A stretch of DNA of 64,000 bases, from assembly GCA_002269645.1 (NCBI GenBank), contig NIVC01000596.1, positions 177,239-241,238 of the forward strand. Direction: 5' to 3'. Each line of letters begins with the position of its first letter. Within the stretch, counting starts at the first letter, position 1. The DNA comes from Macrostomum lignano (Eukaryota). Positions 46,685 through 63,519 of this stretch are shown in pieces. Made by a program: the position numbers and the translations under genes. The notes beneath the pieces are model-generated. The model was not told the DNA's origin and ran no database searches. It saw nothing but the letters and a program-made list of their open reading frames with translations.

Positions 46685-48151
46685 TTAAGCCAGATCAATC
46701 AGGCGCCACAACCGAAGGTGTGCAAGCAGCAAGAATACGCAGAAGGCTGCACAGCAGCTGACTGACACAAGCAGCGAGTACAGATATGGCAGGCTAGCCG
46801 GGGCTGGCAGCACGGCGCCAGCTAGCACAGCGGCCAGAGCCGGGGCGTGCAAACATGCGTGCAAAGCGACCACTAGCCGGCTAGCTGGCCGAATCGATGG
46901 CGACCAGCGGAATAGTAAACCAACAGCGATAACAAAGACTCCGGCACAGCACACAGTTGGCAGTGCCAAGCCGTCTTTGTAGGCTAATAATGGCCACATG
47001 CTAATAGCCGCTAACAATTGAAAACTGCAGGCAAACAACGGTGCCTCTGGCAATAGCAAAACGGCCGACATTGCCGGCAATAGGATGGACTTCTCGTGCG
47101 CCTGATAAGAGAATAGAAAGAAGGCAAGCGAGGCCGCAAAGGAAGCGAACAGGAGAGCGGATCGGCCAGGCCGGTACAGACAGCGGACGAGAGCCGGGGC
47201 GCAGGCGGCCAGGGTGGCAACGGCGGCAACTGCGGCAGCGGCGCCCTGACTAATAATAGTTTTCAATTTCACTACCACATTAATTGTGCACCAAACATTA
47301 GCCACGTGATCTTCGAATAATCCTCGGCCGATTGGGAATAATCTTTGCAAGGCGGCTAAAGCGGCCCTGCCATTGGGAGCGGCTGCAAGTAGAGGCGACC
47401 ACACTAGCAGGAAGGTGGCTAGAACAACAGCGGCTAGAGAACAGAGCAGTCTAACAGCGCGCCAAGGAGCAGCGGCTGACAATAGCAGATTGCAACAGTC
47501 GCCTAACAGATGACAGAACAGCGGCAGAGAATGATACAGAGCCATCTGTTTATAGTTGAGAGCCAGACAGAACAAGCAAGTCCCTAGCAGGCGTCGCCGG
47601 CGCAGTACAAGCAGATGAGCGGCCGCTGCCAGGCCCAGACTGATACAGTTGTACTGAAAGTGTCCGTGATCCACCAGCAGCTGACTCGGCGACAGCATAG
47701 CAACAGCCGATAGCAATAACAGCGGACTGACAGGTGAATAGGCTACGCTAGCTAACAGAACTGGCAGGTGAATGAATAAATCGCTAGTTAGCACTGTGCC
47801 GCGCATCCAAAGCTTATGCGGTGGACTCTGTTCGCCCCGCGAACTGCCCAGCGCCACCCAGCTGGCGTTGATTGCAGCGGCGCGGTAGCCTAGCGCCAAA
47901 CTATGATAGGCGCTCAATGGCGGATAATCCAAGCCCCAGTAGAGCAAGTCGTTCCTACTACTATTAATGTACCATTCGGACACTGGCAGGGCTGTGGTGA
48001 CCTCCTGCCAGTGCCGCTGGGCCTCGTAGTCGCCAAACATTGGCGGCCGGGACTGGCCGGAGTGCGGATAGGGCGCAACGGCAGCCCGCAGCGCCAGGCC
48101 CAGACAGAGGGCGGACAATAGAGGAAGCAGCGGCTGCCAATTCGGCGCCAT
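46685..48151 (-). CDS. ALG6: Dolichyl-PP-Man9GlcNAc2 alpha-1,3-glucosyltransferase, single exon, 488 aa
   Basis: PPMFGDYEAQRHWQE, YWGLDYPPLSAYHS, DHGHFQYNCISLG, LNYKQMALYH, RLFPIGRGLFEDHVANVWC, FSYQAHEKSILLP. Confidence 0.97.
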   Translation of the reverse strand: MAPNWQPLLPLLSALCLGLALRAAVAPYPHSGQSRPPMFGDYEAQRHWQEVTTALPVSEWYINSSRNDLLYWGLDYPPLSAYHSLALGYRAAAINASWVALGSSRGEQSPPHKLWMRGTVLTSDLFIHLPVLLASVAYSPVSPLLLLSAVAMLSPSQLLVDHGHFQYNCISLGLAAAAHLLVLRRRRLLGTCLFCLALNYKQMALYHSLPLFCHLLGDCCNLLLSAAAPWRAVRLLCSLAAVVLATFLLVWSPLLAAAPNGRAALAALQRLFPIGRGLFEDHVANVWCTINVVVKLKTIISQGAAAAVAAVATLAACAPALVRCLYRPGRSALLFASFAASLAFFLFSYQAHEKSILLPAMSAVLLLPEAPLFACSFQLLAAISMWPLLAYKDGLALPTVCCAGVFVIAVGLLFRWSPSIRPASRLVVALHACLHAPALAAVLAGAVLPAPASLPYLYSLLVSVSCCAAFCVFLLLAHLRLWRLIDLA

Positions 48152-48489
48152 ATATCGTCTTGTGCAGCCGGCTTTGAGACTGTTGCTGCTTTTGCTTTGC
48201 TGCTGCTGTCTGAAATTTTAAAGACACGGTTCAATTAACCGATGTGTATTGTACATAACTTTAGTGACAACACTTCGTTTAGTAAATTAATTGGATTTCA
48301 ATTTCGCACCAAAACAAAGGTCGATCAAAATAAAAGTTGCCAACAAGTCGAACTTTTAATACAGCTCGTGTCACCAATTGAAAATATTTACGTTTACTTT
48401 TTCAATACAAAAGCAACTAATTCAAACAGATGCGTAGAAAATGGTTTGAAAGCTGCCTTGACTACTGATTGCATTATTTAATATCTACT

Positions 48490-48730
48490 GATCAGGGGTT
48501 CAGGGACTTTTCTGATCAGGGGTTCAGGGACATCTCTGATCAGGGGTTCAGGGACTTCTCTGATTAGGTACTCAGGAACTTTGATCAGGGATTCAGGGAC
48601 TTTGATTAGGTACTCAGGGACTTTGATTAGGGATTCAGAGACTTTGATCAGGGATTCAGGGACTTTAATTAGGGACTCAGGAAATTTGATCAGGGATTCA
48701 GGGACTTTGATTAGGTACTCAGGGACTTTG
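48490..48730. repeat. 21-bp minisatellite between TRMT61A and ALG6
   Basis: Unit gatcagggattcagggacttt. Confidence 0.9.
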
Positions 48731-61900: not shown

Positions 61901-63419
61901 CACCCCTCCCTGATTCCTAAACACCCTCCCTGATTTCTAAACACCCCTCCCTGATTCCTAAACATCCCTCCCTGATTCCTAAACACCTCTCCCTGATTCC
62001 TAAACACCCCTCCCTGATTCCTAAACATCCCTCCCTGATTCCTAAACATCCCTCCCTGATTCCTAAACATCCCTCCCTGATTCCTAAACACCTCTCCCTG
62101 ATTCCTAAACATCCCTCCCTGATTCCTAAACACCTCTCCCTGATTCCTAAACACCCCTCCCTGATTTCTAAACACCCTCCCTGATTTCTAAACACCTCTC
62201 CCTGATTCCTAAACACCCCTCCCTGATTCCTAAACACCCCTCCCTGATTTCTAAACACCGCTCCCTGATTCCTAAACACCCCTCCCTGAATCCTACACAC
62301 CCCTCCCTGATTCCTAAACACCCCTCCCTGATTCCTAAACCCCTCCCTGATTCCTAAACACACCCTTTTGATTCCTAAACAACCCTATCTGATTCCTAAA
62401 CACCCCTCCCTGATTTCTAAACACCCCTCCCTGGTTCCTAAACACTCTCCCTGATTCCTAAACACCCTCCCTGATTCCTAAACACCCCTCCCTGATTCCT
62501 AAACACCCCTCCCTGATTCCTAAACACCCCTCCCTGATTCCTAAACACCCCTCCCTGGTTCCTAAACACCTCTTCCTGATTCCTAAACACCTCTCCCTGA
62601 TTCCTAAACACCTCTCCCTGATTCCTAAACACCCTCCCTGATTCCTAAACACCCCTCCCTGGTTCTAAACACCTCTTCCTGATTCCTAAACACCTCTCCC
62701 TGATTCCTAAACACCTCTCCCTGATTCCTAAACACCCCTCCCTGGTTCCTAAACACGCCTCCCTGATTCCTAAACACCCTTCCTGATTCTTAATCCCTCA
62801 CTCCTTGCTGATTTATTGATATTCATCAAATATTCTCATCTCTAACTAACGTTATTTACTCCTGAAAAGTCTTGTGAAAACAAAACCTCACCTGCACCAT
62901 CTTGCCAAACGTAATCAGGCCAACTAGAGCATTAGGCGGCAGGAAGCTAAGCGACATCTGTAGCGACTCTTTAACAGCGGCTAATTCCGGCTCCTCTAAG
63001 CAGGTGTCCAGCACAATCAGAAACACGGGCGGATGGATAGCAATTCTCTGTGGCAGCACCGGTACTCCAGCGTAGCGAACTGGGGAATCAGTTCGGCTGG
63101 CAGACTCTGCTCTGTCATGCCGCCGTACTGCGGCGGGAAAGCGTTGCGCTGATAGCAGATACAACAGGTCCAAGCTTTGGCGCGCAGGTCCAGCTGGCAG
63201 AATGGATTCAAAACGGCTCTGCATTGCGGTTTGGAGCACACTACAGGTTCGTAGTGTATTGGGCGGCAGATCTGGTCGCTCGCTTCAACGGAGTGTACAG
63301 AGCGCCAAGCGCACGACCAATCTTGGCCGATTCGATTCTGGAAGCTGGCCAGATGTTCCCAGGACAGTCGGACACCGTCGTCGCTCTTCGCACTGTTGAA
63401 TAAACTCGGAATAGGACAT
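52909..63419 (-). CDS. SEC23: COPII coat subunit Sec23. Exons: 63419-62892, 61803-61021, 58608-58333, 56724-56506, 53844-53410, 52998-52909. The first two exons carry several frameshifts as given
   Basis: [19 protein letters not shown]; [10 protein letters not shown]...C..CYQRN; [24 protein letters not shown]; GKRPLRCTG; [14 protein letters not shown]; [11 protein letters not shown]; [13 protein letters not shown]; GSQARFL..KVNPS; [16 protein letters not shown]. Confidence 0.95.
53065..53365. repeat. (GACA/GGCA)n microsatellite in the last SEC23 intron
   Basis: Direct reading. Confidence 0.96.
53930..54960. repeat. ~21-22 bp degenerate minisatellite with a homogeneous ~43-bp dimer core at ~54470-54750
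   Basis: tttgatgattttagggcggttt units. Confidence 0.92.
55850..56420. repeat. 30-bp minisatellite in a SEC23 intron
   Basis: Unit gatggatcaaacaaagaccaagattgtagt. Confidence 0.96.
57010..57345. repeat. 33-bp minisatellite, ~10 copies, in a SEC23 intron
   Basis: Unit atgtcagacattgataatggaaactgcgcgctt. Confidence 0.96.
57830..58140 (-). mobile_element. tRNA-headed SINE with a CORE/V-like central domain and (ATT)n tail
   Basis: Reverse complement: tagcctagtggctagagcg (A box), gggttcgattcc (B box), gtgtccttgagcaagacacttaac...ctgtaaaatggg, ending in ttattattatt. Confidence 0.85.
58660..60960. repeat. 22-bp minisatellite, ~2.3 kb, in a SEC23 intron
   Basis: Unit cataatcccctatgtagccata. Confidence 0.97.
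61865..62790. repeat. 21-bp minisatellite in SEC23 intron 1
   Basis: Unit cacccctccctgattcctaaa. Confidence 0.96.
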
Positions 63420-63519
63420 TGTTTGGACAGATTGAAGCCTATTGTTTCTTGGAAATTGAGCGCTGGCACTGCACGATTGCTGGAATTCAGCGAATTGGGA
63501 TTCATAAACAGGATTAAAC

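Follow-up and report, generated by a model that had tools for sequence, protein, structure and literature searches.

Do the genes SEC23, HSF, TRMT61A and ALG6 of the flatworm Macrostomum lignano, which lie head to tail on one strand, belong to a single polycistronic unit resolved by spliced-leader (SL) trans-splicing? They occupy the minus strand of a 64,000-nucleotide stretch of contig NIVC01000596.1 (assembly GCA_002269645.1, positions 177,239 to 241,238), hereafter the window, in which an earlier sequence-only reading had proposed a trans-spliced operon. Both SL trans-splicing and operons are documented in M. lignano (PMC8629364, PMC5730564): 30% of the genes are SL-spliced and ~15% lie in operons, the single SL is 35 nt long (CGGTCTCTTACTGCGAAGACTCAATTTATTGCATG) and ends in ATG, and the acceptor motif is [T/C]TNCAG (PMC8629364). 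From comparison of locus copies and public annotation, the four genes are probably a stretch of one co-transcribed, SL trans-spliced unit. SL trans-splicing of each individual gene is near certain, and one line of evidence for it comes from a peculiarity of the reference assembly itself.

The consecutive order SEC23 > HSF > TRMT61A > ALG6 on one strand was borne out by open reading frames (ORFs), Pfam and public gene calls. No opposite-strand gene model falls between the genes, and the order is kept in every locus copy that spans them. The diagnostic domains exceed the curated cut-offs in all four families: several exons of SEC23 together encode its zinc-finger, trunk, beta-sandwich, helical and gelsolin domains, HSF has HSF_DNA-bind (1.6e-28), the methyltransferase TRMT61A has GCD14 (8.8e-68), and the product of ALG6, a glycosyltransferase of the ALG6/ALG8 family, has Alg6_Alg8 (4.6e-114) and finds its best solved-structure match in yeast ALG6 (6SNH, 3.8e-75). 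TRMT61A is 99% identical to M. lignano BOX15_Mlig001228g13, with the next best match at only 41%, and SEC23 is 94% identical to the M. lignano SEC23 in UniRef. The latter match required a roughly full-length reconstructed query; a search with a 160-aa SEC23 fragment returned short fragments only and no M. lignano entry. An exact protein look-up with ATG-started translations of the window genes was likewise empty; in the public models the start is set at the SL junction and not at the ATG.

These public models provide the first evidence for trans-splicing. All of them are 5' partial, and the coding sequence (CDS) of each opens 1–2 nt past a CAG or SL-like ATG, a position that fits trimming of the models at SL junctions. 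Mapped onto the window, the junctions lie 60 nt (SEC23), 14 nt (HSF), 20 nt (TRMT61A) and 58 nt (ALG6) upstream of the respective ATG. The sequence-only reading had instead pointed to acceptor-like motifs at aatag (19 nt before SEC23), aacag (7 nt before HSF), cacag (3 nt before TRMT61A) and tttcag (58 nt before ALG6). The motifs exist at these distances, but only the tttcag of ALG6 coincides with an annotated 5' end, and the junctions of the other three genes are found elsewhere. Moreover, a YAG occurs within 60 nt upstream of 86% of all ATGs on the minus strand of the window and within 20 nt of 52%, so that an acceptor near an ATG is at chance level and carries no weight by itself. This background, together with the misplacement of three of the four proposed acceptors, would suit a view in which the arrangement is fortuitous, the YAGs are random and the genes carry conventional capped 5' untranslated regions (UTRs) or cis-spliced 5' exons. 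Such a view is effectively refuted, and we consider it very improbable: for every gene, in almost all copies, the start of the annotated 5'-open CDS directly follows a CAG or SL-like ATG, and CA-to-AT replacements reproducing the last 3–5 bases of the SL recur at the exact junctions in independent copies.

The replacements become apparent when the copies of the locus are compared. At least three further copies are present in the assembly, on NIVC01000597.1 and in two places on NIVC01000719.1, and aligned segments are 93–99% identical when length differences of tandem arrays are disregarded. At the junctions of six genes, namely the four named above plus THOC1 and FTSJ3, which precede SEC23 in sister copies, some copies have CAG where others have the terminal bases of the SL (ATG, CATG, GCATG or a partial CTG); this was also read at annotated CDS starts in the sister copies L001, L003, L004, L005 and L006. 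At SEC23 the window has gaatTCCAG before CAATCG and three sister copies have gaatGCATG before the same bases. TRMT61A shows TTTCAG in one copy (L001) and TTCATG in two, including the window, and ALG6 shows TTTCAG in two, including the window, and TTTATG in one (L001). CAG was found in no copy at the remaining junctions: at HSF, ATG stands right behind a long pyrimidine tract in three of three copies (CATG in the window), THOC1 has CATG in one copy and CTG in another, and FTSJ3 has CTG in one copy. Since the copies are otherwise 93–99% identical, repeated changes of two to three bases that spell the SL tail at exact junctions cannot be due to chance.

The published assembly method suggests how such an imprint could arise. 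Both DNA and RNA-seq reads went into the Pilon polishing of assembly Mlig_3_7 (PMC5730564), and most likely the acceptors were overwritten in this step by SL-bearing RNA-seq reads that had been aligned over their full length. The only SEC23 copy that keeps CAG, that of the window, differs from the other three in exon 1 almost solely by about eight single-base indels, which, judged from the alignment, are a signature of unpolished long-read sequence. Further indels lie around 61700–61400, and across the 5' half of SEC23 (63479–61000) they cause repeated frameshifts relative to three near-identical sister copies. Long-read error that escaped polishing seems a better description than a pseudogene, and the frameshifts explain why only the C-terminal 357 aa are represented in the public SEC23 model of this contig (Mlig018425g1).

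Alternatively, the CAG/ATG differences might be true allelic or paralogous variation, with trans-splicing lost in some of the copies. The locus does exist in at least four diverged copies in a hidden polyploid (PMC10468722). However, the replaced bases always spell the 3' end of the SL, at six different genes, and all three HSF copies would then be without an AG although the annotated junction sits there. Given also that polishing with RNA-seq is part of the published method, and that the sole SEC23 copy with an unpolished appearance is the one keeping CAG, we attach next to no probability to this explanation. If the SL tail was instead imprinted by polishing, SL-bearing reads end at these junctions and the genes are SL trans-spliced. 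By imprint or 5' boundary evidence this includes all four genes, THOC1, FTSJ3 and the next gene downstream of ALG6 (junction 42625).

Several observations accompany the junctions. At HSF, TRMT61A, ALG6 and the downstream neighbour of ALG6, the SL contributes an AUG that is not in frame with the main ORF, and this also holds for SEC23 in the clean sister copies, where the junction lies 58 nt from the ATG. The additional AUG yields short or overlapping upstream ORFs, which at TRMT61A amount to a single codon (AUG-UGA). The last seven SL bases, TTGCATG, also occur on the minus strand at 49899–49893, 50 nt upstream of the TRMT61A junction, where L001 reads TTGAATG; this could be an additional, alternative SL site, likewise overwritten, or chance. 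Window-wide the frequency of TTGCATG is at chance level, so the imprint is recognisable only at junctions and not by k-mer counting. No SL RNA gene was found in the window.

SL trans-splicing does not in itself make an operon, and the case for co-transcription draws on the public annotation. Across sister copies the models of the four genes have the common prefix Mlig001228 (SEC23: g6 and g9; HSF: g12 and g7; TRMT61A: g13 and g5; ALG6: g14). The MligNNNNNN prefix denotes a cluster, at ≥95% identity, of 'transcriptional units' assembled from RNA-seq; such a unit often represents a precursor of several genes, and the division into single genes was then made at SL-read peaks and poly(A) sites (PMC5730564). 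For unrelated genes to have one prefix, an assembled transcript has to span them. The common prefix of the four genes is thus published, if indirect, evidence of one precursor. In addition, the locus agrees with the operational definition of M. lignano operons (Ustyantsev & Berezikov 2021), under which same-strand neighbours with an SL-spliced downstream gene and a repeat-adjusted gap below 1 kb are counted (PMC8629364). The genes are adjacent and equally oriented, the downstream genes are SL-spliced as judged from the 5'-partial models and the SL-tail imprint, and all three stop-to-junction distances are below 1 kb with the upstream 3' UTRs still included, so that the true spans from poly(A) site to junction must be smaller.

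The stop-to-ATG gaps measure 941 bp (SEC23–HSF), 935 bp (HSF–TRMT61A) and 691 bp (TRMT61A–ALG6), in line with the earlier estimates of ~940, ~935 and ~690 bp. Two of them had been described as largely filled by simple repeats, which is overstated: according to Tandem Repeats Finder (TRF), arrays take up 476 of 935 bp (51%) between HSF and TRMT61A and 242 of 691 bp (35%) between TRMT61A and ALG6, and none lies between SEC23 and HSF. Repeats are known to inflate operon spacers in M. lignano, where the main mode of the repeat-adjusted distance is ~100 bp (PMC8629364). The absence of coding-strand AATAAA from the three gaps was confirmed, with four ATTAAA being present. Contrary to its earlier use in favour of an operon, this absence is uninformative because upstream cistrons must still be polyadenylated; by a rough estimate of ~2 expected occurrences, zero in ~2.6 kb is also only mildly unusual. 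We further sought a poly(A)-tail imprint, i.e., A-runs differing between copies, in the SEC23–HSF spacer and found nothing convincing.

As we infer it, a single precursor from one promoter would feed all four genes. RNA polymerase II would read through SEC23, HSF, TRMT61A and ALG6, possibly having started further upstream at THOC1 or FTSJ3. The 35-nt SL would be joined to a pyrimidine-rich (Y)TNCAG-type acceptor 14–60 nt upstream of each ATG and give each cistron its own 5' end, while the preceding cistron would be cleaved and polyadenylated inside the spacer, at a presumed poly(A) site. The spacers would be long for an operon because tandem arrays were inserted, which is the published pattern in M. 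lignano.

A number of points weigh against co-transcription and suit an alternative in which the head-to-tail genes each have their own promoter and outron in a spacer of 0.6–0.9 kb and are SL-spliced individually. Assemblers of the StringTie type can fuse same-strand neighbours via read-through or overlapping UTRs, and the common unit name would then reflect read-through or such a fusion. Most SL-spliced genes of M. lignano (~60%) are not counted in operons (PMC8629364). The spacers, at ~0.4–0.9 kb from the stop, are several-fold over the ~100-bp mode, approach the 1-kb threshold before 3' UTR subtraction and are long enough for promoters, proximal regions of up to 2 kb upstream being sufficient as promoters in this species (PMC5730564). 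In the window copy the 3' half of SEC23 is assigned to a different unit, the above-mentioned Mlig018425g1, and HSF is without a public model. Finally, the linkage is not conserved in two flukes: no HSF or ALG6 was found within 10 kb of TRMT61A in Clonorchis and Paragonimus, so the combination is not visibly conserved or ancient, and the synteny in relatives that the sequence-only reading had named as a check was not recovered there.

Against separate promoters stands the one unit prefix that is common to four unrelated genes across copies. Two of the spacers shrink to ~0.4 kb after repeat removal, with the upstream 3' UTR still included, and only 77 unique nt separate the array from the junction in the HSF–TRMT61A spacer. 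Furthermore, the SL-spliced same-strand run continues upstream with FTSJ3 and THOC1 and downstream with a 518-aa ORF gene. We therefore consider separately promoted genes a possible but rather unlikely arrangement and favour the operon. Of the earlier proposal, the trans-spliced operon as such is upheld by the common prefix, the 5'-open CDSs at SL junctions and the 1-kb rule, whereas most of its acceptors and its placement of SEC23 as first cistron are not. The functional link that it drew between endoplasmic reticulum export, N-glycosylation, tRNA modification and the heat-shock regulator is supported by nothing except co-location.

Nor can SEC23 be called the first cistron with confidence: it is SL trans-spliced as well, and two further genes, FTSJ3 and THOC1, are situated upstream of it in the same orientation. 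FTSJ3/Spb1 and THOC1 precede SEC23 in sister copies outside the window (L004, 1–10000; L006, 1014–10000), have SL-type 5' boundaries and are separated by spacers consisting mostly of tandem arrays. The repeat-adjusted stop-to-junction distances are ~660–750 nt from FTSJ3 to THOC1 and ~1130–1170 nt from THOC1 to SEC23. The latter two genes are set apart by a 20-bp tandem array of ~0.9–1.5 kb in the sister copies, and the end of the window falls inside it. Six or more cistrons (FTSJ3 > THOC1 > SEC23 > HSF > TRMT61A > ALG6) may thus be combined, which, if true, would place the unit among the largest M. lignano operons. We see an even balance for and against the joint claim that a unit of at least six cistrons reaches from FTSJ3 to ALG6 and that the SL-tail imprint is genome-wide in Mlig_3_7.

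In the downstream direction, ~4.1 kb separate ALG6 from the next SL-spliced gene. Its 518-aa ORF has no Pfam domain, and its 5'-partial public model in copy L003 starts after TTTCAGCAG, which indicates that it is SL-spliced, too. Pfam at E ≤ 0.01 gave no confirmation of the labels 'TSC22-like', 'NOLC1' and 'glycine-rich' that had been given to downstream genes. Shortly past the end of ALG6, a short antisense ORF fragment on the plus strand (~46470–46610) contains WNILPHQSYYPDLSLCDFFLFHRIKESMQ and, judged by eye, looks like the C-terminal end of a mariner/Tc1-type transposase; no match came from a Pfam scan of a neighbouring frame.

Table 1 Features of the SEC23–ALG6 locus, in window positions.
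Feature	Position	Strand	Details
SEC23 gene	52909..63479	minus	First exon base 63479, after TTCCAG; junction trinucleotide 63482-63480; ATG 63419; exon 1 end 62892; further coding blocks (approximate) 61815-61032, 58611-58330, 56733-56503, 53868-53410, 53001-52912; stop 52911-52909; from Pfam, tblastn of M. lignano SEC23 (P0247) and four-copy exon 1 alignment
SEC23 intron arrays	58657-60967, 61865-62793, 53922-54958, 55831-56429, 57017-57346, 53072-53365		Tandem arrays
SEC23–HSF spacer	51982..52908	minus	927 nt from stop to SL junction; no tandem array; ATTAAA at 52456
HSF, intronless	50759..51981	minus	Junction first base 51981; junction trinucleotide 51984-51982; ATG 51967; stop 50761-50759
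HSF–TRMT61A spacer	49844..50758	minus	915 nt from stop to SL junction; 476-bp (CTGA/CCCA)n-type array at 49921-50396; 439 nt repeat-adjusted
TRMT61A (GCD14 family), intronless	48843..49843	minus	Junction first base 49843; junction trinucleotide 49846-49844; ATG 49823; stop 48845-48843
TRMT61A–ALG6 spacer	48210..48842	minus	633 nt from stop to SL junction; 242-bp 21-mer array at 48489-48730; 391 nt repeat-adjusted; ATTAAA at 48669, 48482 and 48360
ALG6, intronless	46685..48209	minus	Junction first base 48209; junction trinucleotide 48212-48210; ATG 48151; stop 46687-46685
20-bp tandem array	63538..64000		Directly upstream of the SEC23 SL junction; runs off the window (TRF)
518-aa ORF, next gene downstream of ALG6	41037-42593		Junction 42625

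Repeats are also prominent within SEC23, whose introns consist largely of long tandem arrays (e.g., a 22-mer repeated 105 times over 2.3 kb) with lengths that vary among the assembly copies. The array-free SEC23–HSF spacer contains a tRNA-box-B-like GGTTCGATTCC motif at ~52212–52202, inside a GC-rich patch at ~52240–52195, and sister copy L003 is without 92 bp adjoining this patch (window 52142–52051). ARAGORN and Rfam scans over the region found nothing, which rules out a recognisable tRNA gene; the motif may be the remnant of a tRNA-derived element. No second copy of the spacer, and hence no sign of a dispersed repeat, was found within the window.

The practical consequences concern the assembly more than the biology of the locus. 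Through the imprint, the reference loses the acceptor AG and gains false upstream ATGs. For users of Mlig_3_7, apparent 5' UTRs and upstream ATGs can therefore be corrupted, with effects on motif statistics, splice-site prediction and the design of guides and primers at these sites. If the imprint is genome-wide, polishing would have replaced CAG by the ...CATG of the SL at many of the 20–28 thousand trans-splice sites. This could partly explain why the published motif search recovered [T/C]TNCAG at no more than 44% of SL sites, and would make SL junctions locatable from the assembly alone by comparison of duplicated copies. We regard the imprint as the only mildly new item here, and it is technical in kind. 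The probable operon is of small biological import, as thousands of such operons have already been counted in M. lignano, but for transgene design in this species the sequence upstream of HSF, TRMT61A and ALG6 is probably intercistronic spacer and not promoter.

In comparison with known systems, the locus resembles the SL2-type operons of Caenorhabditis elegans in that a polymerase II precursor would be resolved by coupled 3' end formation of the upstream cistron and SL trans-splicing of the downstream one, and housekeeping genes dominate operon membership there. C. elegans, however, employs a specialised SL2 and spacers of ~100 bp, whereas M. lignano has one SL (PMC8629364) and the spacers measured here are 633–927 nt; the mechanism is analogous but the locus is not of that class. 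Within the same phylum, operons of Schistosoma mansoni and cestodes are likewise defined by strand, proximity (thresholds of 200–1000 bp) and downstream SL (PMC12582326), although the median intercistronic distance in S. mansoni is ~99 bp (PMC12582326). The closest counterparts are the operons described in M. lignano itself (Wudarski et al. 2017, PMC5730564; Ustyantsev & Berezikov 2021, PMC8629364), with the same 35-nt SL ending in AUG, same-strand neighbours, SL-spliced downstream genes, (Y)TNCAG-type acceptors, repeat-inflated spacers and adjusted gaps below 1 kb. SL and operon genes of M. lignano are generally conserved housekeeping genes (PMC8629364), as are those considered here, and the locus already stands under one unit prefix. 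Relative to a typical M. lignano operon nothing is different in kind: 75% of these operons comprise two genes and the maximum is nine (PMC8629364), and with four genes, possibly six or more, the locus exceeds the usual size and has spacers at the long end of the range. The finding is real but ordinary: a probable operon, and an example of a documented and abundant arrangement that was already implied by the public annotation.

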